This document shows, piece after piece, positions 7,182 through 29,455 of a stretch of DNA of 64,000 nucleotides. A model generated the notes under the pieces. It made no database searches, was not told the DNA's origin, and saw nothing but the letters and a program-made list of their open reading frames with translations. A program made the position numbers and the translations under genes. The stretch is from the sequence record PQ182779.1; one strand, written 5' to 3'. Every line of letters starts with the position of its first letter. Position 1 is the stretch's first letter.

Positions 7182-9148
7182 TGCAAGTTGTGTGGGCAGA
7201 AGACATCGTACACTGGACCGAGGAAGAACTCTGGAAAAAGGAACACGACCATGATCGATTTCGTTTAGTCTTCAGTGATGGCGAGATCATTACAGATTGG
7301 TCGCAGACGATTGTTAGTTGGTATTTCTGGGAGGTATTTCGAGACTACCCTGACGCACAAATCAGTATTCGTCATCATCTCTGGGATGACTTTGATTCGC
7401 CGGGGTTGGAATTAAAAATCCTCAACCGCATGAAGGAGGTTGTTCTCGAAGCGTATCCGCATGAAGACATTGAAAACCTACAGGCTGCTATCTATCGCGG
7501 CAATAACCGGTTACACAATGCCTTCACGACGCGCGGCGAGGCGTATATCGATACCGTTGATGTTCTGACGTTATTGGATATCTACGACCGCCCTGAGATC
7601 CAGAATGCGCTCTATAACATGGAACCGAGCCCTGGCGGGGTCAACCGTGCATACGGGGTGATTTCCCGTGTGATTGCCACTGACCCCTTCTTACAAGGGA
7701 ACAGCATGGCGCTGGCCTGTCACATCGGTCAGACGAAAATGGCGCAGTTCCATCAGGTCATCGGGAAACGAGGGTGGTGTTCTGAAGTTGATCAGAGCAT
7801 CTTCCCTAACGTCGTCAATGCGGGGTTCTTTGAAGGGATACATCGGGCCAGTTTCTTCGCCATGATCTCCAGAGACGCCTCTAAAGCGCTCCAGGCGACG
7901 GACGATCCTGTTAAGCAGACGGAGTATTATAACCGTGAGCTGCAGCTCTTTACGTACGTTGTGAAGAGCATTTGGATGGGGGATTGCGGAAGTACGGAAA
8001 CGATCCCGTGGACGGTGAAGAAAAACGAACTGGATAATATCTTACCCGGTAAGTTTTATCTCACTGAAACAGGACAACTCAAAGCCATTAAGGCAGGAGA
8101 CGTCTTCCTGGTAGGGAAAACGATTCAACTGCGGAATGTGGCGTGTTGTTGGCATCCTGATGACGGCGTAGTCTGTAGCACCTGTATGGGCCAGTTGGCG
8201 CGATCCGTGCAACGAGGCACTAACCTGGGACATGCCGCAACCGTAACCCAGAACGAAAAGGTCTCTCAGGACGTTATCTCGACGAAACACCTTCTGCGCT
8301 CTGCTGAGACGGAAGGTTTTGAAATCGATCCGTTCTATAAGGACTATATGGTCAATGCGTCGGATATTTCTGAGCTGATGCTGTCTGAGGCGATCTGGAA
8401 TCATCATGTGGAAATCGAAATCGATATGGCGTATCTGCCACGTCTTTCCGATATTCATGCGATGACCGAGTTCAGTCAGAATGACCTCCGCCGTATTTCA
8501 GGCGTAGAAGACGTCATGATCATCGTTCACCAAGGCGATGTCAAAGGGACTATCAAGGAAGAATTGATCGCTACAAGTCATTCGTCTTATAAACCGTTCT
8601 TAACCGCTGCCTTTATTCAGCACATGAAGGATTACGGTTTCCAGAACTTAGGGCGTAAGATTCGGGTTGATCTGAAAAACTGGGACCCTTCAGAAAGTAT
8701 TCTGAAATTCCCGGAACGTCATAGCTCGACGCTCGAGATGATGATGGAGTTAAAATCCAATATCTTCATGTCGAGTAAGGAATCGAAAGAGCGGTTACGG
8801 TATGACTTAACCGACCCTGACATTCTGGCGATGGCGTTGAAAGACATTTCGGAAATGACGAACCGTAAGTTCTCGGTTAACCTGGCGATTGTGGAAATTG
8901 TCCTTTACGCCATGATGTCGCGTGATCCGAAGAATGGCGATTTCCGTTTACCGAAGAAAGGGACGGGACGTTACTTCGCTACGAAATCCGATATCATGTC
9001 TGGACGGAGTCTCTCGGTGAAATGTGCTTACGAGAAGCAGTATCAAAACATGCTCTCTCCGGGCTCGTATGACCCGATTAAAGAGAACCATCCCTTCGAC
9101 TATCTGTTGTTGGATGTCGATAAGGAAATGCGTTTAAAACGTATCTAA
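7181..9148 (+). CDS. Non-virion RNA polymerase beta-prime subunit, C-terminal part (phiKZ gp74-like)
   Basis: Bridge-helix-like KQTEYYNRELQ, zinc-site DCGS and CSTCMG, trigger-loop-like EKVSQDVISTKH; stop/start overlap with the beta gene. Confidence 0.9.
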   Translation: MQVVWAEDIVHWTEEELWKKEHDHDRFRLVFSDGEIITDWSQTIVSWYFWEVFRDYPDAQISIRHHLWDDFDSPGLELKILNRMKEVVLEAYPHEDIENLQAAIYRGNNRLHNAFTTRGEAYIDTVDVLTLLDIYDRPEIQNALYNMEPSPGGVNRAYGVISRVIATDPFLQGNSMALACHIGQTKMAQFHQVIGKRGWCSEVDQSIFPNVVNAGFFEGIHRASFFAMISRDASKALQATDDPVKQTEYYNRELQLFTYVVKSIWMGDCGSTETIPWTVKKNELDNILPGKFYLTETGQLKAIKAGDVFLVGKTIQLRNVACCWHPDDGVVCSTCMGQLARSVQRGTNLGHAATVTQNEKVSQDVISTKHLLRSAETEGFEIDPFYKDYMVNASDISELMLSEAIWNHHVEIEIDMAYLPRLSDIHAMTEFSQNDLRRISGVEDVMIIVHQGDVKGTIKEELIATSHSSYKPFLTAAFIQHMKDYGFQNLGRKIRVDLKNWDPSESILKFPERHSSTLEMMMELKSNIFMSSKESKERLRYDLTDPDILAMALKDISEMTNRKFSVNLAIVEIVLYAMMSRDPKNGDFRLPKKGTGRYFATKSDIMSGRSLSVKCAYEKQYQNMLSPGSYDPIKENHPFDYLLLDVDKEMRLKRI

Positions 9149-13292: not shown

Positions 13293-13736
13293 GTGGGTAT
13301 TTTATATTTGCGGAAAGGGGATTTGTTTGAGGAAGAGGCTGAGGTCGTAAAGGTCGTAACCGTAAATTGCGTAGGGGCAATGGGTGCTGGAGTTGCCTTG
13401 ACATGCAAGCAACGCTACCCTGAGGTCTACGCGCGGTATAGAGCGCAGTGCGATAAAGCCCAATGGAAACCAGGGAACGTCTGGTATACGGAAGCGAACG
13501 ACGGGACGCGACTGCTACTGGCGGCGACTAAAGACCATTGGCGTTACCCCTCTCGGTACCTGTGGGTAGAAGCCTGTTTAAAACGGATCGCGGTCTTTGT
13601 AGAACGGGAACAGGTCAACACGCTTGCATTAACGCATTTGGGCTGTGGTAACGGTAAGTTAGATCCGGTCATCGTGAGGAGGATGACAGACGATGAATTG
13701 GGTGCAGCCTTAGTTGATGTTCATTTGTATTTTTAA
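13293..13736 (+). CDS. Stand-alone macrodomain protein (Poa1p/DarG-like ADP-ribose hydrolase)
   Basis: VTVNCVGAMGAGVA and HLGCGNGKLD macrodomain motifs; GTG start with AGGAG RBS. Confidence 0.85.
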   Translation: MGILYLRKGDLFEEEAEVVKVVTVNCVGAMGAGVALTCKQRYPEVYARYRAQCDKAQWKPGNVWYTEANDGTRLLLAATKDHWRYPSRYLWVEACLKRIAVFVEREQVNTLALTHLGCGNGKLDPVIVRRMTDDELGAALVDVHLYF

Positions 13737-21748: not shown

Positions 21749-22516
21749 ATGGCTAAGTTACACGAAGTATTGGCAGCAGAACCCACTCGCACCAAACAAG
21801 TGCAAGTCCTGATCGAAGACGCCAGTAAAAAATTCAATAAATCGGCTGAATATTTCAGCGGGTTTGATAAAACCCTGAAACTGCACGAAGACAACGACGC
21901 CAACGCCGCGATCGAAAAAAGCGAAAGTACCAGCAAGGCAGTGATCACCACTGTTGCCGAAACGCTGCAGTACCTCTTCGAATATTTCGCCACCGCAGAA
22001 GACCTTCGCCTGCAAAAAGCCCTGACCAATCAGGTAGCGAAAGCAGACATCATGTTCAAAGGCGAAGTCCTCGTTTCTGGAGTGCCGGTAGATGAACTCC
22101 TTGGCCTGGAAAAACGCCTGGCGGAACTGCGCAAACTGATCGCCGCTGCCCCTACTCTGGATTCGTCCAAACAATGGGAACGCGATAGCAACAGCACCTA
22201 CGGATTCCGTACCGTGACGGACGAAGTCACGACGAAAACCGAGAAAGTGCTCACTCCGGTTATCCTGGCGCCGGCTACCGACCACCACCCTGCACAGGTG
22301 AAAGAATCGGAAAGTACCGTCGTAATCGGTAGCTTCACCCGTAAAAGCTATTCCGGCGCCTGCACCCCGATGCAGAAAGCCAACGCACTGCGTGATATCG
22401 ACGAACTGATCGTTGAAGTCACTAATGCACGTATGCGTGCAAACTGCACCGAAGTTGTTCAGGGTTCTATCGGCGAAGTACTGACCAACGTGATTCTGAA
22501 AAACTTCACTGCTTAA
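21749..22516 (+). CDS. Conserved ~255-aa coiled-coil protein of unknown function (MAKLxxxxA... family, recalled as DUF7873-like)
   Basis: RBS TAAGGA; strongly C-ending codon usage suggesting high expression; motifs VPVDELLGLEK and PATDHHPAQV resemble a widespread phage/bacterial family. Confidence 0.7.
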   Translation: MAKLHEVLAAEPTRTKQVQVLIEDASKKFNKSAEYFSGFDKTLKLHEDNDANAAIEKSESTSKAVITTVAETLQYLFEYFATAEDLRLQKALTNQVAKADIMFKGEVLVSGVPVDELLGLEKRLAELRKLIAAAPTLDSSKQWERDSNSTYGFRTVTDEVTTKTEKVLTPVILAPATDHHPAQVKESESTVVIGSFTRKSYSGACTPMQKANALRDIDELIVEVTNARMRANCTEVVQGSIGEVLTNVILKNFTA

Positions 22517-22605
22517 TGTGTTAGTAATGGGTATTCTCACGAGTACCCATTGATAATAAAGATTGAGGCCAACCTTATCTTTATTGTTAGTCCGTGTTGC
22601 AGGTG

Positions 22606-22686
22606 TGATGACCCCACTGGAAGTTCGACTCTTTCTTCTCCCACCAAACTATGGGAGAATGGCGGAATTGGTAGACGCAGTCATCA
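22606..22686 (+). ncRNA. Circularly permuted tRNA-like RNA 1 (YrlA/Y-RNA-like topology)
   Basis: TGATGAC/GTCATCA closing stem; T-arm GGAAG-TTCGACT-CTTTC; acceptor TTCTCCC-A-CCA...GGGAGAA; D-arm GCG-GAATTGGTAGA-CGC, in the order T, acceptor, D. Confidence 0.75.
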
Positions 22687-22760
22687 ATGCACCCATAATG
22701 CTACTCGGATGGTTAGTGTTAACTTTATCTTATCGCCTCACACGCTTAAAGATAAAGAGT

Positions 22761-22957
22761 AGACAGTAAAATAGCGGACTGAACTTTCTTTCTTTTACGG
22801 AAAGAATTCTAGAGGTCGCGGATTCGAATTCCGCTCTGCCTACCTGGACACATTCACAGAGTGTTTCTTGGAGGCAGATAGCTCAGCCGGTAGAGCACTA
22901 GATTATAAAATAAAACTTCCAATCTTATTCTTAGATAGGTCGCGCTAAATTCTGTTT
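22761..22957 (+). ncRNA. Circularly permuted tRNA-like RNA 2 with long bulged terminal stem
   Basis: TCTAG/CTAGA stem; T-arm GCGGA-TTCGAAT-TCCGC; acceptor TCTGCCT/AGGCAGA closed by a hairpin; D-arm GCTC-AGCCGGTA-GAGC; ends pair AGACAG/CTGTTT and TAGCG-GACT/GGTC-G-CGCTA. Confidence 0.75.
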
Positions 22958-23068
22958 ATAGCTGAATGGCTATGGGCGGTGTTGGGGATGGTTATATCCT
23001 TACCTCCGCCCTTCTTACCACAAAAGTTTCTTTTTCAAAGAGATCACTTTTTGATAAATAAATTATTC

Positions 23069-23107
23069 GAGAGAGGAGGGAATTCCCTCCTCTCTCCTAT
23101 GCTTTTT
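23069..23107 (+). terminator. Terminator-like hairpin closing the protein + RNA unit
   Basis: GAGAGAGGAGGG-AATT-CCCTCCTCTCTC then CTATGCTTTTTT. Confidence 0.75.
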
Positions 23108-23155
23108 TACGGTAAACTGTTTTAATGTAGAAGACACTTTTTAATTGAGGAATTT

Positions 23156-24043
23156 ATGGATAACTCAACCGTTGTCATTATTTTGACGTTGAGCCATAGG
23201 CTCCGTAAATCAATGACTACACTGGCTAATGAGAATAGCGATTGGATGATTCTCTCCCATTGTCTATTGGAATGGTCGGTGCAACAATTTGTTTCACGTA
23301 AACCGGTAGAATTGATCCCTATCTTCAAAGATCTCTACGAACGCTTTCTCAAAGAGCACGAAGAGGAATTCTTTAAGGTTCGGATGGGTTACGGGTTACA
23401 AAAAGCAGAATGGAAAGACGACACGGTTTGGTTACACTTTGCAAATCGTGACCCTAAACATTTCCCGGATTGGACTATTATTAACGGATTGAAGATTCCC
23501 GACGTTAATGATAAGACGATAGAGGGTGTTGTAGTTTATCATCCGAAAGACTCCGCGGTGTATTATAGTGAAGTCAGTCGAATGCCAAGGCACGCAGTAG
23601 TACAAACAGAAGAATTTCTTCGCCTGGGTATCCACAGTAGCAAAGTCCTTCAGAACGCTTTTGATGCTACCCCTATCAATTTACTGGCGTCACGATTCTT
23701 GTTAGTGAATGACCATGAGAAATGCTGGGCAGTTTCAAAAGGTTTCTCTATGTGGTGGAAAGACACTCGTCAAGGTTACCCTACGGTTACTGAAGATCAG
23801 AGCGACGACTACGGACAGGAAAGAAAAACCAAACCGGTTTGGCGTGATAAATTCGCCGAGTCTCGTCAGAAGCCAAAAAGTAAAAATCCGAATAACCCTG
23901 ATTACAAGCGAAGAGTGAAAGTAGGTAAGAAAGAGTACCAAAACGCTTTCAAATGCTCTCAGGGAGAATCTATTCAACCAAGAGAAGTTTACGCCCGTTG
24001 CTATTCTAAACGACCAGAATGGGCAGAGTGGAACTTTATTTAA
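23156..24043 (+). CDS. Hypothetical protein with basic C-terminus
   Basis: 295 aa, RBS GAGGA. Confidence 0.7.
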   Translation: MDNSTVVIILTLSHRLRKSMTTLANENSDWMILSHCLLEWSVQQFVSRKPVELIPIFKDLYERFLKEHEEEFFKVRMGYGLQKAEWKDDTVWLHFANRDPKHFPDWTIINGLKIPDVNDKTIEGVVVYHPKDSAVYYSEVSRMPRHAVVQTEEFLRLGIHSSKVLQNAFDATPINLLASRFLLVNDHEKCWAVSKGFSMWWKDTRQGYPTVTEDQSDDYGQERKTKPVWRDKFAESRQKPKSKNPNNPDYKRRVKVGKKEYQNAFKCSQGESIQPREVYARCYSKRPEWAEWNFI

Positions 24044-24065
24044 TTCCCTTCAGGAGGGACAGGTT

Positions 24066-24221
24066 ATGAAAAAGCATCACGAATACGAATGCAAAAATTG
24101 CTTGACCTCTCCAACGGATAAGCAGTTAAAAGAATTTAAACTGCAAGATAAACCGCTACTCTGTAAGAATTGCGGATCGGATGATTTCCAGCAAACTCCT
24201 TTACCTGAAGACTCGAATTGA
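24066..24221 (+). CDS. Small zinc-ribbon protein (51 aa, CKNC...CKNC)
   Basis: Manually translated: MKKHHEYECKNC...LCKNCGSDD; RBS GGAGGG; absent from the ORF track because it is under 60 aa. Confidence 0.75.
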   Translation: MKKHHEYECKNCLTSPTDKQLKEFKLQDKPLLCKNCGSDDFQQTPLPEDSN

Positions 24222-24249
24222 TCAAAAAATACTCTACTCAGTCATTTAT

Positions 24250-24600
24250 GAACCCAACCTTCAGGTTCCTTTTCACGGTAGTAAACCCCCTGTCGTTGCG
24301 AATGAACGCCAAGGGAATCACAACAACACTTTTATCTCAATGCGGGCTGGCTGGTAAGATAAACAGGTGATTCCTTTTCAAGGTTCTTTCCATGAATGGA
24401 GAGACGACGACACTTCTTCACCGACGCAGACGCCTAGCTAATTCAGGCGCCTGTCTTTTTACAATAGATGATATCTACAGATAAGGCTGACCTTAAATCG
24501 GCATAATTCAACTTACTCCTACTGTGGCCCGGAATCCAAAGATAGGAAAGCTGAAAGTTTGTAGATGTCATCGCCCCTTTTGAGGGGCTGACTTGCAACT
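24250..24600 (+). ncRNA. Candidate structured non-coding RNA/leader
   Basis: ORF-free, starts at TATGAAC; 15-bp helix 24467-24481/24558-24572, 11-bp helix 24311-24321/24367-24377, 8-bp helix 24291-24298/24405-24412. Confidence 0.45.
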
Positions 24601-24750
24601 AACTTAATCTTAAACCCTTACAGGTAGCACGAAACAAAGGCGCCTCTTTATTCCGTGACATGATTAATGCACATGTTGGGCCAACTTGTCAGCCTCTCAA
24701 ATTCACTGTGGCGGTTATGCCGCTTGACACCCATACTTTCCTTAAAGGGA

Positions 24751-25614
24751 ATGCAAATGAAGAAACTTGCTTTTGCCGTGTTTTCGGTAGCGTTACTTTG
24801 CATGAGTGCTGGCGTATCCGCGGCCGATGGCAAAATTGTTATTACCACCGGTCAACAAGGTTTAACTTATAACGCCGTTTATGGCGTAAACTTAGCTAGT
24901 GCTCTAAGCGAGTACGGTTACCAGACTTCGGTTGTCCCTTCTAAAGGCTCGCTCGATAACCTTGATCGTGTAGCCTCTGGAGAAGCCACTATCGGGTTTA
25001 CCCAAGCTGATGCTTATCAGTTCTGGCGTTCGCGTCATGCCAACGAAGCACAGAACGTTGATATCATTGGCGAACTGGCCAGTGAGTGCGTCTTTGTCGC
25101 CGTCAAGAAAGACGGTAAGGTCACCGGTAAAGGTGATCTAAAAGAAGGCACTAAAATCGCTGTAGGTGAACCTACCTCTGGATCTTACGCTTCGTGGCAG
25201 TATCTCCAGACGTTGGAGAAAAACTACGCGAAAGTTGAAACGTATGCCAAAGGCGGTATCCGTTCCCTGGCTAAAGTGAATACTGGCGAATACGACGCGT
25301 TCCTTTGGGTTTCTGCACCTGACCGGAATAATAAATTCCTGGACGCAGCCATGCAAAAAGATTCGGGGCTCGAGATCATTGATTTCAACTCCTGGAATGC
25401 TGATGCAAAACTGCCGAACGGTAAAGCGGTGTACACGATCGAAAAAGCAACAACCGACTCGGGTATCCTTTTCAATTCGACCGTAAAAGTCCCTTGCACG
25501 AAAACCCTGGTGGTAGCGAATACCTCAGGCGACAGCGACCAGTTCCTTGAAGATGCCTCTACAATTCTTCTGAAGAACTCTGCGCGCGTTCAGGGTACAA
25601 CGTCAGGAAAATAA
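24751..25614 (+). CDS. TAXI-family TRAP transporter solute-binding (periplasmic) protein
   Basis: Signal peptide MKKLAFAVFSVALLCMSAGVSA; SKGSLDNLDRVASGEATIGFTQAD and IAVGEPTSGS motifs; start revised to 24751/24757 (AAGGGA RBS). Confidence 0.8.
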   Translation: MQMKKLAFAVFSVALLCMSAGVSAADGKIVITTGQQGLTYNAVYGVNLASALSEYGYQTSVVPSKGSLDNLDRVASGEATIGFTQADAYQFWRSRHANEAQNVDIIGELASECVFVAVKKDGKVTGKGDLKEGTKIAVGEPTSGSYASWQYLQTLEKNYAKVETYAKGGIRSLAKVNTGEYDAFLWVSAPDRNNKFLDAAMQKDSGLEIIDFNSWNADAKLPNGKAVYTIEKATTDSGILFNSTVKVPCTKTLVVANTSGDSDQFLEDASTILLKNSARVQGTTSGK

Positions 25615-25617
25615 GTT

Positions 25618-25782
25618 ATGCTGAAAAAGATCGGCTGGTTAATATTACTGGCCGTCATCTTTTTGGTGTTGTTTCGAATGGCAGGTGTATTGATTGATAT
25701 TGTCCTGCTTATTATTCTCGCTGGTGCAATTGCCATTTATGTGCAGCTTGCTTTCAGAAAGAAAAAGAAACAATCGAGCTGA
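25618..25782 (+). CDS. Small two-TM membrane protein (54 aa)
   Basis: Manually translated MLKKIGWLILLAVIFLVLFRMAGVLIDIVLLIILAGAIAIYVQLAFRKKKKQSS; 3 nt after the TAXI stop. Confidence 0.75.
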   Translation: MLKKIGWLILLAVIFLVLFRMAGVLIDIVLLIILAGAIAIYVQLAFRKKKKQSS

Positions 25783-25834
25783 CGGTATTTTACAAAGGGT
25801 ACATTTATGTGCTCTTAATAAAAGATCGTTTTTT

Positions 25835-25910
25835 GGGTCCATAGCTCAGTGGTTAGAGCAGGCGACTCATAATCGCTTGGTCGCAGGTTCAAAACCTGCT
25901 GGACCCACCA
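25835..25910 (+). tRNA. tRNA-Ile2 (CAT)
   Basis: Canonical 76-nt cloverleaf with CCA; body closely resembles E. coli ileX-type tRNA rather than Met. Confidence 0.9.
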
Positions 25911-25915
25911 TATTT

Positions 25916-26000
25916 GCCCAGGTGGTGAAATCGGCAGACACAAGGGATTTAAAATCCCTCGCTTTATCGCGTGCGGGTTCGAACCCCGCCCTGGGCACCA
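25916..26000 (+). tRNA. tRNA-Leu (TAA)
   Basis: Long variable arm, loop TTTAAAA, CCA end. Confidence 0.95.
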
Positions 26001-26005
26001 TCTAC

Positions 26006-26079
<74 letters not shown>

Positions 26080-26160
26080 CTTCATTATTATTCATCCCAC
26101 AGTTTTTGTTGGTCTTCCTATTTCGGTTTAGACCGCTAACTTGTATAAGGTAAAAGTAAA

Positions 26161-26502
26161 ATGAATGACGTAACATTTGCACACAGTCAAGAAGACATTG
26201 ACCATATTTCTTATCGTCTTCCTTTAGCCTCTGATCGAACGATTAACGATCCGGCTTATTTGATTAAGTCGAAAGACGTTTTCGATATGATCAGGGGAAC
26301 AGAAGAACTTAATAAGATTGAGAGTTCGAATAATATACGAATAATACACCACTCTCAGATTTACCAAGGACCTTGGAGAGACCAATTTTTATCACTGATC
26401 AATGCAGCCGCTAAACGCAATGGTTGGAATACCGTCACCCAATATGGCGGACAAATTCTTTTGGTTGCTGATATCTGGTTATCTGTAGGGAAATTCCGGT
26501 AG
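26161..26502 (+). CDS. Hypothetical protein inside the tRNA cluster
   Basis: 113 aa, RBS AAGGT. Confidence 0.65.
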   Translation: MNDVTFAHSQEDIDHISYRLPLASDRTINDPAYLIKSKDVFDMIRGTEELNKIESSNNIRIIHHSQIYQGPWRDQFLSLINAAAKRNGWNTVTQYGGQILLVADIWLSVGKFR

Positions 26503-26699
26503 GCAATCAAAATTTAAGTAATTCAATATATTATGAACAAAGATTGTAACTTTCTCTCCGGAATGTTAAGACAACAATCAACCTGTTCAAATATTGCGCA
26601 AGTCTCAGAGGGAAACCATACGCCCTGAGAAGAAACTAATAGTGCTCCTTGGCCCGAGAGTAAAGAATGCAGCGCTGAAATAATCGGGTCCCAAATTCA

Positions 26700-26783
26700 G
26701 GGGAAGTTCCAGAGTGGTCAAATGGGTCAGACTGTAAATCTGCTGCTTCGGCTTCGGTAGTTCGAATCTACCCTTCCCCACCA
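26700..26783 (+). tRNA. tRNA-Tyr (GTA)
   Basis: Loop CTGTAAA, long variable arm, CCA. Confidence 0.95.
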
Positions 26784-26790
26784 GTTTTAT

Positions 26791-26865
26791 AGAAGCGTAG
26801 CCAAGCGGTTAAGGCCCCGGGCTTTGATCTCGGTACCCCTAGTTCGAATCTAGGCGCTTCTGCCA
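26791..26865 (+). tRNA. tRNA-Gln (TTG)
   Basis: Loop CTTTGAT, acceptor AGAAGCG/CGCTTCT, CCA. Confidence 0.9.
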
Positions 26866-26870
26866 TTAGC

Positions 26871-26946
26871 GCAAGTATAGCTCAGTCGGTAGAGCGATGT
26901 CCTTCCAAGTCATAGGTCGCGAGTTCGAACCTCGCTGCTTGCTCCA
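26871..26946 (+). tRNA. tRNA-Gly (TCC)
   Basis: Loop CTTCCAA, U73, CCA; one T-T mismatch in the anticodon stem. Confidence 0.9.
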
Positions 26947-26954
26947 GATACAAT

Positions 26955-27055
26955 GTTCTCGTAGCTCAACTAGGTAGAGCGCCTGCATCGGCGGCCACTG
27001 CGCCGCCCACTGCTTAGCAGGAGGTTGCCGGTTCAAATCCGGAAGGGAACAACCA
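26955..27055 (+). ncRNA. Atypical tRNA body with a 30-nt hairpin insert replacing the anticodon loop
   Basis: D-arm GCTC-AACTAGGTA-GAGC, anticodon stem CCTGC/GCAGG, insert ATC-GGCGGC-CACTGC-GCCGCC-CACTGCTTA, T-loop TTCAAAT, ends ACCA. Confidence 0.75.
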
Positions 27056-27063
27056 AACAAAAA

Positions 27064-27138
27064 GGTGCTATCGTCTAGTGGAAAGGATACCTCCCTGTCA
27101 CGGAGGAGACCGGAGTTCAATTCTCCGTAGCACCGCCA
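27064..27138 (+). tRNA. tRNA-Asp (GTC)
   Basis: CCTCC-CTGTCAC-GGAGG, G73, CCA. Confidence 0.95.
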
Positions 27139-27144
27139 AATAAT

Positions 27145-27218
27145 GACTCTTTAGTTCAGTTGGTTAGAACGGCAGCCTGTTAAGCTGTAGGTCCCAGGTT
27201 CAAGTCCTGGAAGAGTCG
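27145..27218 (+). tRNA. tRNA-Asn (GTT), CCA not fully encoded
   Basis: GCAGC-CTGTTAA-GCTGT; acceptor GACTCTT/AAGAGTC. Confidence 0.9.
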
Positions 27219-27227
27219 CATTTTAAT

Positions 27228-27317
27228 AGAGAGTTGGATGAGCGGTTTAAGTCGCTCCCCTGCTAAGGGAGTGTATCCGAAAGGGTACCGAGAGTTCGAA
27301 TCTCTCACTCTCTGCCA
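27228..27317 (+). tRNA. tRNA-Ser (GCT)
   Basis: CTCCC-CTGCTAA-GGGAG, long variable arm, G73, CCA. Confidence 0.95.
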
Positions 27318-27570
27318 AATAATGACATCTTGCTTAGACTAAAGGTAGGGGTTAACCAGGCGACTTAATGTTGCGGAGAGTTAATCTTGACCTAAGGCAA
27401 AAGTTGACCTCGGCATGCTGAGGGGGATGTCTCCTTGTTATCCCTACGTAAATCATCGACGAATAAATGAGCCGTTAAATACGACCCATTTAAGCATAAT
27501 TGCATCTCGGCTAAACACCGGGCGCTGCTGGTGTAGATGATACTCATTGAGTGCTAGGGAACCTATTCAA

Positions 27571-27678
27571 TGATAGGCTAGCTTAAAGGTAAAGCGCGGG
27601 CATTAGGCCCCCTCTCATACGAGGGGCGCCTTAACATGGGAGCCTGAGATAGCCGTTCGATTCGGTACCTATCAACCA
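27571..27678 (+). ncRNA. Atypical tRNA body with a 40-nt hairpin insert replacing the anticodon loop
   Basis: Perfect acceptor TGATAGG/CCTATCA plus A-CCA; D-arm GCTT-AAAGGTA-AAGC; stem CGGGC/GCCTG; T-loop TTCGATT. Confidence 0.8.
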
Positions 27679-27682
27679 AAGT

Positions 27683-27832
27683 TGGACTTAAAAGAGATAG
27701 TGCGAGTTAATGGGTCGCACAACGCCACTAGGCGAGACACCGGAGTCAGTGGTGGCGCTAGTAGAAGAAGTCAGTTACCGGTATGCGGCCGCAACAAATT
27801 AACTGATACCCATTCTACACTTTTAAAGTCCA
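27683..27832 (+). ncRNA. Candidate 150-nt multi-branched, pseudoknotted RNA domain
   Basis: Closing helix TGGACTT-AAAAG/CTTTT-A-AAGTCCA enclosing three hairpins with complementary loops. Confidence 0.5.
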
Positions 27833-27904
27833 CGTAACCTTTACAATACTGCTCTAGTCAAGTGATATTGTTTACAGAGAGTGCAGGTTCGACTCCTGCT
27901 CGGT

Positions 27905-28345
27905 AGTAGAGGCTCGGTAGGAAGGGAGTTCGGAATCGTATCCGAATGATTTGTCCGATAAGCAATAACTTATTGGTAACTCTCGTGAGACAAAGACTTC
28001 GGCGACCCGCCGGTTAAACGCGCCGCGGAATCGGCCGAGGGGTACTAATTATGACGCCTGTCATTTTCGGCGGCCTACGCCTTAGAGCGAAAATAGGCGG
28101 CCACAGACCATAGACCTCAGCCGGGGATTCCGGCGAAAGAGGTGCAAGGAGCCGGCAAAAATGTCCGGGGGCGTCACCCTATTCGATCCATTTCTCCAAC
28201 GTAGAAGGGATCGGGTATTAAAAATATGGAAATTAAGCTAACTCGTATAGCCGAGAATAAACATGTTTCGGTGGCGACCTTAACATGAAAAGGATGATGT
28301 GCGATAAGTCATTTATGAGCTAAACACTGAGATCCTTTTGACGAT
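27905..28345 (+). ncRNA. Candidate large structured RNA containing an RNase P S-domain-like module
   Basis: ORF-free GC-rich stretch; TGACGCC/GGCGTCA helix enclosing GCCACAGACC-[hairpin]-TGCAAG-...GGCAAA. Confidence 0.5.
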
Positions 28346-28356
28346 AAGTCAGTACG

Positions 28357-28392
28357 AGAGAAGGTCGAAAGACCTTCTCTTTATGCTGTTTT
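28357..28392 (+). terminator. Terminator ending the tRNA/ncRNA array
   Basis: AGAGAAGGTC-GAAA-GACCTTCTCT then TTATGCTGTTTTT. Confidence 0.8.
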
Positions 28393-28430
28393 TATGAATA
28401 AAGTAATAGTCAAAAAAAAGGTGGTCTACC

Positions 28431-28589
28431 ATGAGCTTAATCTTCACAGTTCTTTCCGTTGTTGTTATCGCACTGATTGCAATTTTTGTCTACCGTAAGC
28501 ACAAAGACAAAATGGATCCTACCCTGGATAAGGTCGCTGATAAGTTTGATGAAGTCAAAAACAAAATCAATGACAAGTTGGGTAGCTAA
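28431..28589 (+). CDS. Small single-TM membrane protein (52 aa)
   Basis: Manually translated MSLIFTVLSVVVIALIAIFVYRKHKDK...; RBS AAGGTGG; preceded by TATGAAT. Confidence 0.75.
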   Translation: MSLIFTVLSVVVIALIAIFVYRKHKDKMDPTLDKVADKFDEVKNKINDKLGS

Positions 28590-28591
28590 TT

Positions 28592-29455
28592 ATGCCATTA
28601 AGATCAAAGGTACTTAGCTGGAGTAGACCCAGTAATGAAGGGTTAGTGAACAAATTTTTTGGCGCGAAAGTAGAGAGGATGGATATTCCCAATGAAACCG
28701 AAAAGGCGCTATTCTTTCTGCTAAAAAATAGCGATAAGCTTAGTCAAACTTTCGGTAATCCTCCCTGGAACAAAAATCATCTGGTAATTGACAAAAATAA
28801 CAAACTTTGGTCTCATTTGACGTTAGATAATAAGGTACCCACAGACTTCGAAGCTGCGTTAGAACGTACCTACAATGAGACCAAACATTTCGCGGTGGAA
28901 GGCGCGAAAAGACTGAAACAGTACGCCGAATCTATTCATGCAACGCGAGACAAAATAGAAAAGGCATATTCCGAGGGTAAGATTCCTGACCCCAATAAAG
29001 CCATTATTGACATCTACGGAAAAGTGAAAAACCCCGCTGCTGGTTTACATTATTCTAAACCGTTGTTCGGAGGGTGTACGATTAAAGTAGCGCAAAACGG
29101 AAAAATTGAAAGATCTAATACGTTTAATAGTAACGTATTAGGGGTGGTATTATCACCGGAAGAAATTGCCAAATGCGTTTCTGTAGCACTGGAGATCCTG
29201 AAGACCAGCTCTGTTTTTGTTGAAGACTGGGATAATTTGAAATTTTTTGACGAGCCAGGAATTGATAGCGATGCGGGAATCTGGCAAAGCGACAAAGTAG
29301 ATATCAATAACGAAGAGATTTGTTCTATTGGCGTCGCAGTAGATGTAGAAGGTAATGGACTGACCGCTGAGTTAGTTTACCTGACCCCAATTCGCTGCGT
29401 CCAGCAGGCCGTTGTCGATTTTTTTCGTCTAATAAATGATTCAATTAAAAAATAA
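28592..29455 (+). CDS. Hypothetical protein, possibly a processed virion head protein
   Basis: 287 aa; N-terminal RPSNE/GLVNKFF resembles S-x-E maturation sites of phiKZ-like head paralogs. Confidence 0.5.
   Translation: MPLRSKVLSWSRPSNEGLVNKFFGAKVERMDIPNETEKALFFLLKNSDKLSQTFGNPPWNKNHLVIDKNNKLWSHLTLDNKVPTDFEAALERTYNETKHFAVEGAKRLKQYAESIHATRDKIEKAYSEGKIPDPNKAIIDIYGKVKNPAAGLHYSKPLFGGCTIKVAQNGKIERSNTFNSNVLGVVLSPEEIAKCVSVALEILKTSSVFVEDWDNLKFFDEPGIDSDAGIWQSDKVDINNEEICSIGVAVDVEGNGLTAELVYLTPIRCVQQAVVDFFRLINDSIKK

Follow-up and report, generated by a model that had tools for sequence, protein, structure and literature searches.

Introduction

The transfer RNA (tRNA) arrays of phages are usually seen as codon supplements or as spares against anticodon nucleases. 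Here we describe a member of such an array in which a structured arm stands where the anticodon loop would be. The DNA analysed, in the following the window, is a stretch of 64,000 nucleotides (nt) that is 100% identical (megablast) to record PQ182779.1 of the Klebsiella jumbo phage vB_kp_MJ359 (MJ359; window coordinate + 62000 = record coordinate). At 27571..27678 on its plus strand lies a tRNA-like gene of 108 nt, here called el1, the limits of which, including the encoded A-CCA, are given by Rfam RF00005, ARAGORN -i and the GenBank annotation, where it is listed as "tRNA-OTHER" at the same coordinates (record 89571-89678). Our best explanation, held with moderate confidence, is that el1 is a stable, functional, non-decoding tRNA mimic, whose conserved arm is its working part.

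Close relatives of MJ359, with genomes of ~300 kb, are LPKP23, the KpSz/KpZh/KpLz/KpXa/KpYy series, vB_KpM_FBKp24 (FBKp24; genus Maaswegvirus) and Centimanus. The lineage has been described as a jumbo myovirus with tubulin-spindle and nuclear-shell proteins (phiKp24 paper), and because of these proteins we regard it as nucleus-forming.

Small RNAs without an assigned function are known from inside a phage tRNA cluster, namely RNAs C and D of phage T4 (species 1 and 2 RNAs, rnaC/rnaD), of which rnaC terminates in a canonical T arm and an acceptor-like stem. They resemble el1 in their setting, but show no sequence similarity to it, are not full cloverleaves and fold differently; the Rfam tRNA model does not match them (the best score, 17.5 bits, is for tRNA-Sec), whereas el1 keeps everything except the anticodon loop. 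A second kind of relative in form are the irregular tRNAs with 8/4 and 9/3 acceptor branches (allo-tRNAs; phage 8/4 tRNA-Ser/His), with which el1 shares a 12-layer branch split 8/4. Irregular tRNAs occur in phage tRNA clusters and some have been proposed to be non-translational (Mukai et al. 2017, PMC5389517). In allo-tRNAs, however, the anticodon loop is an ordinary one of 7 nt and the variable arm is usually long, while el1 has a variable region of 5 nt (AGAUA), no anticodon loop, and a C.A mismatch as its eighth acceptor pair. As such, el1 extends the known phage tRNA-like RNAs and the irregular 8/4 tRNAs.

Three further systems show parts of the same plan. Going by its citation in PMC5389517, tRNA-Other of Bacillus cereus is tRNA-shaped, may be charged and is not used in decoding; as far as that account goes, it differs in being a chromosomal gene with an altered, not replaced, anticodon loop and no sequence relation to el1. 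YrlA-type bacterial Y RNAs (Rfam RF02553) combine a tRNA-like elbow with a long helix at the place of the anticodon stem, but are circularly permuted: a T arm, an acceptor stem capped by a loop and a D arm follow one another, flanked by a Ro-binding helix, and the ends lie in the long stem. In el1 the acceptor ends, with CCA, are free and it is the arm that is closed; its element order is normal and no YrlA match was found on 27560-27690. The tRNA-like domain of transfer-messenger RNA (tmRNA), finally, is an acceptor/T module with CCA and a long helix instead of the anticodon arm. el1 lacks the G3.U70 pair (its third pair is A-U), the tag reading frame (the stop of a mini-frame is lost in relatives) and the series of pseudoknots, and ARAGORN -m found nothing in 22001-29000; el1 as a tmRNA was rejected.

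Results and Discussion

el1 is a tRNA body with an arm in place of the anticodon loop

An earlier reading of the window (the original prediction) had described el1 as a tRNA body in which a structured insert of 40 nt replaces the anticodon loop, and the bases, the fold and the Rfam score all agree with this. The acceptor stem is, as claimed, perfect over 7 bp, with UGAUAGG (27571-27577) paired to CCUAUCA (27668-27674) and followed by A27675 and CCA at 27676-27678. Taken as 8-nt strands, UGAUAGGC (27571..27578) faces ACCUAUCA (27667-27674) in seven Watson-Crick pairs and C27578.A27667; the latter strand, with discriminator A27675 and CCA, occupies 27667..27678, and similarity to relatives stops after its terminal A. 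The consensus D arm is likewise as described: positions 27579..27596, the same in all relatives, comprise U8 A9, the arm GCUU-AAAGGUA-AAGC (27581-27595) with G18 G19, and G26. The T arm, which had also been called normal, is not fully so: its loop is UUCGAUU, and its stem has only four pairs (GCCG-UUCGAUU-CGGU). Together with the variable region AGAUA it spans 27647..27666, where a single variant was seen, 27651 A>G in a metagenome contig (L034). Altogether, the elbow is complete (U8, A14, G18 G19, U54 U55 C56, A58, plus A73-CCA).

The extra C27578 separates the 7-bp acceptor stem from U8 and faces A27667; Infernal flags both the mismatch and the shortened T stem. Because of this extra nucleotide and the four-pair T stem, the acceptor branch of el1 is of the 8/4 type, with 12 layers and C.A as the eighth pair, a layout that has been described for irregular bacterial and phage tRNAs (PMC5389517). 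Measured against a canonical tRNA, el1 thus has 8-nt acceptor strands and a 4-bp T stem where a 7-bp acceptor and a 5-bp T stem are the rule, and in unspliced form it has 40 nt between the anticodon-stem strands where a 7-nt loop with U33 and purine-37 belongs.

These strands, CGGGC (27597..27601) and GCCUG (27642..27646), pair with one G.U (G27598.U27645). The insert between them (27602-27641) measures exactly 40 nt and reads AUUA + GGCCCCCUC + UCAUAC + GAGGGGCGCC + UUAACAUGGGA. Its 5' joining segment AUUA (27602..27605) is invariant. It is followed at 27606..27630 by a G+C-rich hairpin, found in both the minimum free energy and the centroid fold, in which GGCCCCCUC pairs with GAGGGG(C)GCC, leaving C27627 bulged, around the hexaloop UCAUAC (27615-27620). 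The 3' joining segment UUAACAUGGGA (27631..27641) is unpaired in the fold, invariant in all relatives, and has CAUG in common with the hexaloop of the FBKp24 type.

The minimum free energy fold consists of the cloverleaf and a hairpin of 9-10 bp with one bulged C and a 6-nt loop; its energy of -39.1 kcal/mol (z -1.86) is by itself unremarkable, and the hairpin taken alone reaches -16.6 kcal/mol. When a short stretch is searched, RF00005, whose gathering score is 29, gives el1 34.4 bits (E 4e-6), and Infernal treats the insert as a 36-nt insertion in the anticodon loop. The expectation that tRNA scanners would miss the gene was borne out: Rfam searches of the whole window and of 8 kb, as well as default ARAGORN, pass over it, the GenBank label is merely tRNA-OTHER, and it is called once ARAGORN is run with introns. 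We conclude that el1 is a real tRNA fold beyond chance.

el1 is more constant than its surroundings

By blastn, el1 is present in full length and with 97-100% identity in 13 phage records (11 genomes, Maaswegvirus group), and in no others among 50,697 records. Between MJ359 and FBKp24 or Centimanus, 105 of its 108 positions and 38 of the 40 in the insert are identical, compared with 77-83% identity in the flanking coding genes, ~72% in the spacer before el1 and 87-100% in the canonical tRNAs. The alignment collapses directly before U27571 and after A27678. An element so much more constant than its flanks, and with such sharp borders, is probably under selection. The insert is kept in all 13 related records and no relative has a normal tRNA at this place; since the relatives all retain it, a private, unconserved mutation is excluded.

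FBKp24 and Centimanus differ from MJ359 at three positions of el1. The change 27645 U>C preserves its pair by turning the G.U of the anticodon stem into G-C, and 27615 U>C and 27619 A>G both lie in the hexaloop, so that all three substitutions appear benign. Within the hairpin both stem strands are invariant, the hexaloop holding its only changes. A pattern scan of IMG/VR returned three loci with the same two haplotypes only, and a metagenome pattern scan returned the two known haplotypes and the single-base variant 27651 A>G mentioned above, plus unrelated tRNA-like genes.

A paralogue with the same arm plan

Between tRNA-Gly and tRNA-Asp, at 26954..27055 on the plus strand, lies a second tRNA-like gene, el2, of 102 nt (Rfam tRNA 38.9 bits; tRNA-OTHER in the record), which default ARAGORN misses and which is present in the same 13 phage records as el1. 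It has an 8/5 acceptor branch with an 8-nt acceptor strand and an A-CCA end, and its anticodon loop is replaced by a hairpin module of 30 nt: the stem CCUGC/GCAGG encloses AUC (where el1 has AUUA), the hairpin GGCGGC-CACUGC-GCCGCC and then CACUGCUUA. The two inserts are alike in their A-U start, in a hairpin rich in G+C whose loop has 6 nt and in a 3' segment of 9-11 nt, and in each a motif is common to loop and 3' segment, CAUG in el1 of the FBKp24 type and CACUGC, which occurs twice, in el2. With the inserts masked, el1 is closer to el2 than to any of 101 unique tRNAs compared. Body similarity gave no isotype, as no compared tRNA resembles el1 better than el2 does. We thus treat el1 and el2 as probable paralogues. 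The acceptor/T junction of el2 has two G.A mismatches, which are replaced by G-C and A-U in Centimanus, where U/A at T-loop positions 54/58 has also become A/U; as far as sequence comparison can tell, these compensatory changes indicate selection for the fold.

The canonical tRNAs of the array (25835-27317, plus strand) are Met/Ile2-CAU, Leu-UAA, Arg-UCU, Tyr, Gln, Gly, Asp, Asn and Ser-GCU. el1 lies on the same strand at the end of this array, in a stretch poor in open reading frames (ORFs) that extends to a strong terminator at 28356-28381. While el1 and el2 are constant in 13 of 13 records, five of the ordinary tRNAs are each absent somewhere: Gly in FBKp24, Asp and Ser in Centimanus, and Tyr and Gln in KpYy_2_45 and one metagenome contig.

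These data bear on the idea that el1 is a decaying tRNA pseudogene, in which a small palindromic insertion in the anticodon loop is passively carried in a young clade. The clade is indeed shallow, with only two haplotypes, phage tRNA arrays do gain and lose genes, and the label in GenBank is just tRNA-OTHER. Decay, however, does not fit an element that is more conserved than the flanking coding genes, has sharp borders and an intact elbow, acceptor and CCA, and is kept by every genome even though true tRNAs are lost. The two paralogues with one unusual plan would moreover require duplication after the arm arose, or convergence, and the compensatory repairs in el2 of Centimanus speak for maintenance of the fold. 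We thus consider a pseudogene very improbable.

An intron that is excised by proteins is not favoured

Intron-containing pre-tRNAs of archaea and eukaryotes also carry an insert of tens of nt in the anticodon loop region, and the original prediction had offered such an intron as one reading of el1. A protein endonuclease would cut out 33 nt and an RtcB-type ligase would seal the halves to a decoding tRNA. On paper this works. When introns are allowed, ARAGORN calls el1 either a Pro(UGG), whose 33-nt intron follows nt 34, or a Leu(UAG), whose intron falls at 37/38, and U33 and G37 are in place; removal of 27605-27637 leaves the loop AUUGGGA of Pro(UGG), removal of 27608-27640 the loop AUUAGGA of Leu(UAG). 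Pro(UGG) is common in T4-type phages and absent from this array, the phiKp24 lineage has a bona fide RtcB (FBKp24 gp230, L038 4456-5700; PF01139, 4e-120), and in an analogous gene of Erwinia phages, described below, UU-ACG-A stands immediately before the insert.

Nevertheless, a valid-looking loop is expected by chance in about 1 of 3 cases given these flanks (our rough estimate, not a computed value), and the intron match is not improbable because the flanks let several deletions give the same acceptable loop. A bulge-helix-bulge, that is, two 3-nt bulges with a 4-bp helix between them at the splice sites, is absent from el1, whose 9-10 bp hairpin is preceded by 3-4 unpaired nt and followed by 10-11. 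No valid loop results from splicing the paralogue: ARAGORN with introns reads el2 as Ser(GCU) or Pro(CGG), yet no single deletion yields purine-37, and el2 of FBKp24 has C33. Unlike protein-spliced introns, the insert of el1 is conserved, including its single-stranded parts. Both inserts open with A at position 32, where all nine canonical tRNAs of the cluster have C or U. Codon usage (17,921 codons in 61 window genes) gives little reason for either product, CUA being the rarest Leu codon (4%; 59/1,586) and CCA making up 16% of Pro codons.

By tblastn, close copies of RtcB are confined to FBKp24, KpSz_1, KpZh_1 and KpZh_LPS_45; there is no such gene at the syntenic locus of MJ359 (record 257451-263097), KpLz-2_45, LPKP23, KpLz_1_41, KpXa_1 and KpYy_2_45. 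The scanned neighbour proteins include no splicing endonuclease, and we know of none in host or phage. Rfam returned no self-cleaving ribozyme, riboswitch or group I intron on 27560-27690 (E up to 10), and at 40 nt the insert is too short for a group I intron, which takes ~200 nt or more and a P1-P9 core. In four metatranscriptome runs, which gave thin, low-depth contigs, no spliced joint was seen; one unspliced contig, covering 27577-27715, comes from a wastewater metatranscriptome and is likewise of low depth. No case of a protein-spliced phage tRNA intron came up in a search of the literature.

Hence the valid loop stands on paper, while the lack of a bulge-helix-bulge, the paralogue, codon use and the distribution of RtcB all speak against an intron-containing tRNA, which we regard as distinctly unlikely. 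Its most specific form, in which el1 is truly split by the insert and becomes a decoding tRNA-Pro(UGG) during infection, once a protein endonuclease and a ligase of the RtcB type have removed 33 nt, is highly unlikely. If true, el1 would be the first case of protein-dependent tRNA splicing in a bacteriophage-bacterium system.

The tip loop of the arm is not an anticodon loop

The tip of the hairpin had been likened to a CAU anticodon loop on an extended arm, a view that did not survive comparison with the relatives. The loop has 6 nt, not 7, and the would-be U33 is C in relatives, the loop reading CCAUGC in FBKp24, Centimanus and one metagenome contig; an arm ~12 pairs too long would not reach the decoding centre. 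With 6 nt each, neither the tip loop of el1 nor that of el2 is anticodon-like. The alternative pairing of UCUCAU with AUGGGA as a pseudoknot does exist on paper, with one G.U that is G-C in relatives, but it is not sterically easy: 2 nt of the hairpin stem would be needed for it as well, and a mere 5 nt are left to span a helix of 9-10 bp. The change at 27615 (U.G to C-G) would be compatible with a pseudoknot of loop and tail; the two loop changes could equally represent a swap of U-A to C-G that closes a triloop.

Nothing was found in support of a ribosome-interacting mimic. A mini-ORF with a Shine-Dalgarno-like GAGGGG (AUG GGA GCC UGA) was rejected, as its stop becomes CGA in FBKp24 and Centimanus. 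As a candidate antisense RNA, the 3' segment has 7 matches with ≤2 mismatches versus 4.4 expected, the sole perfect match being el1 itself, and duplex energies with the other non-coding regions are unremarkable.

el1 might also use its tRNA scaffold to mimic a specific host RNA hairpin, for example a repeat of the clustered regularly interspaced short palindromic repeats (CRISPR), as an RNA anti-CRISPR, or a piece of tmRNA. A hairpin with a bulge and a hexaloop is a typical shape of protein operators, the loop motif recurs in the tail (CAUG in el1 of the FBKp24 type, CACUGC in el2), and el1 is weakly similar to E. coli ssrA, CAUG-CGAGGGGCG. However, 4% of shuffles do as well as this similarity, and blastn found no match in E. 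coli genomes. As a widespread or CRISPR repeat the hairpin was rejected: a pattern scan of 185,579 species genomes (GTDB), which was no test against the CRISPR repeats of Klebsiella, gave 34 single chance matches in G+C-rich genomes and never one in an array. Of the explanations considered, a copied host hairpin seems to us the least probable.

A proposed non-decoding tRNA mimic

The position of el1 within the array allows a simpler role, in which the tRNA-like body recruits RNase P and the 3' enzymes only to give its neighbour RNAs defined ends, and the arm has no function. Such tRNA-like punctuation is an established principle (mitochondrial transcripts, MALAT1-mascRNA). In Centimanus el1 follows tRNA-Asn by 8 nt, and in both FBKp24 and Centimanus a conserved downstream RNA begins 2-3 nt past the CCA of el1. 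For this purpose, however, an ordinary tRNA would suffice, and punctuation leaves unexplained why 38 of 40 insert positions, unpaired ones among them, are conserved and why el2 has the same arm plan. In MJ359, moreover, a segment of 159 nt separates el1 from the downstream RNA, and el1 is still kept. Punctuation alone is thus an unlikely explanation. This segment (27679-27837) is not found in FBKp24 and Centimanus and is present in an IMG/VR contig (L009).

We favour the explanation that el1 is a non-decoding tRNA mimic, which starts from its observed fold, its 8/4 branch, the conservation that includes the arm, the existence of a paralogue and the constancy across the clade. Given its position, its strand and the single strong terminator, el1 would be transcribed together with the array. 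Because the 12-layer acceptor/T stack and the D/T elbow are intact, host enzymes could excise it, RNase P cutting at U27571 and 3' trimming proceeding to the encoded ACCA. The mature RNA is predicted to be L-shaped with an 8/4 acceptor branch, in keeping with its secondary structure, and to have its anticodon arm lengthened by an internal loop and a hairpin of 9-10 bp that has a bulged C and ends in a hexaloop. Because this long arm replaces the 7-nt anticodon loop, tRNA geometry would leave el1 unable to read a codon on the ribosome. The arm itself is under sequence constraint, and for this reason we take it to be the specific working part, putatively a protein-binding site, with the tRNA body providing stability, processing and recognition by tRNA-binding factors. 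In this role, el1 would serve some tRNA-directed factor of host or phage as a decoy, sponge or handle.

Several points weigh against this explanation. The only transcript-like contig, that of the wastewater metatranscriptome, could be DNA carry-over. Only two haplotypes and one single-base variant are known, and for this reason the structure of the arm is without true covariation support. The high identity of el1 could partly stem from recent exchange of a cassette rather than from selection, and a splicing route, though unlikely, is compatible with the sequence. The window offers no standout complementary target, and the hairpin has no match to a known protein-binding motif or one like a CRISPR repeat.

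In the array of Centimanus, a gene for an HNH endonuclease lies between tRNA-Met and tRNA-Leu (L003 2134-2595), which is not so in MJ359 and FBKp24; this insertion is consistent with cassette turnover.

Further tRNA-like RNAs in MJ359 and beyond

el1 and el2 are among several tRNA-like non-coding RNAs in and around the tRNA array of this phage. About 5 kb upstream of el1, at 22517-23155, lies an ORF-free stretch of 640 nt. Its overall identity to FBKp24 is 93%, and up to ~22900 it hardly varies. It contains two circularly permuted tRNA-like modules on the plus strand, both with the order T arm, loop-closed acceptor stem, D arm. In module 1 (22619-22678, in region 22585-22720), ...UUCUCCC-ACCA is intact, GGGAGAA comes next and the D arm is of class II. 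Module 2 (22818-22896, in region 22802-22929) is matched by the Rfam YrlA model with 37.6 bits (E 1e-6), a score below the gathering score of 69. A Pfam scan of 28 proteins found no Ro/TROVE partner for these Y-RNA-like modules. At 22761-22844 (plus strand) ARAGORN reports a tRNA-Stop(tta), which has a poor D arm, acceptor mismatches and a T arm in common with the YrlA-like module, and a suppressor tRNA-Sup-TTA has been reported at the same locus (phiKp24 paper); both are probably misreadings of the permuted module.

Downstream of el1, the plus-strand region 27838-28390 is ORF-free, up to 99% identical over 27991-28260, and has G+C-rich helices and T-arm-like hairpins, e.g. GCAGG-UUCGACU-CCUGC at 27883-27899. 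Across three genomes, 18 of its base pairs show compensatory changes, and it includes the strong terminator already mentioned; no Rfam family matches it.

Jumbo phages of Erwinia share with MJ359 the synteny of an NMT1-like gene and the tRNA array. Asesino, phiEaH2 and Stratton have a tRNA-like gene of 119-121 nt directly after tRNA-Ser(GCU) (L014 8358-8476, L022 8359-8478, L026 2501-2621), in which ~66 nt, including a long hairpin, replace the anticodon arm; GenBank has it as tRNA-Ile(aat), ARAGORN as Arg(ACG) with an intron of 40-48 nt. Blastn gave no hit between the non-coding RNAs of MJ359 and those of the Erwinia phages.

The Y-RNA-like modules, the covarying downstream RNA and the Erwinia analogues together point to a set of tRNA mimics in nucleus-forming jumbo phages. 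Within the array of MJ359 and its relatives, the two non-decoding members are kept by every relative while ordinary tRNAs come and go, which suggests that such arrays partly supply tRNA-shaped RNA with another job. el1 would be a natural example of a hairpin displayed by a tRNA scaffold, and the partner of its arm, once found, could reveal a new mechanism of counter-defence or RNA handling. For annotation, the consequence is that genes of this kind are missed, labelled tRNA-OTHER or mis-assigned, as with the tRNA-Ile(aat) of Asesino and the tRNA of phiKp24 that was reported as a suppressor.

Further irregular tRNA-like genes stand in Erwinia arrays (L015 5308-5401, L016 3169-3239, L019 about 8590-8740). 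They include a tRNA with an 8-bp acceptor, a long variable arm and an AAU anticodon, units of 71 nt that have an acceptor and a T arm and no recognisable D or anticodon arms, and a cloverleaf without U33 in its anticodon loop. Two metagenome contigs (L028 4014-4429, L029 469-1008), which surfaced solely through a D-arm motif in common with el1, carry tandem arrays of tRNA-like genes of 112-135 nt. A common hairpin module of 40-50 nt separates the D arm of each gene from an anticodon-like hairpin, after which UAACAGC follows in L029.

Two other observations concern the window itself. Upstream of tRNA-Tyr, the spacer 26503-26699 is 95% identical to FBKp24 and Centimanus, compared with only 77% in the neighbouring ORF, and may thus hold a promoter region or one more functional non-coding element. 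The gene at 13293-13736 (plus strand), annotated as a phosphatase, encodes a Macro-domain protein (PF01661, 1e-7), a domain class that acts on ADP-ribose derivatives.

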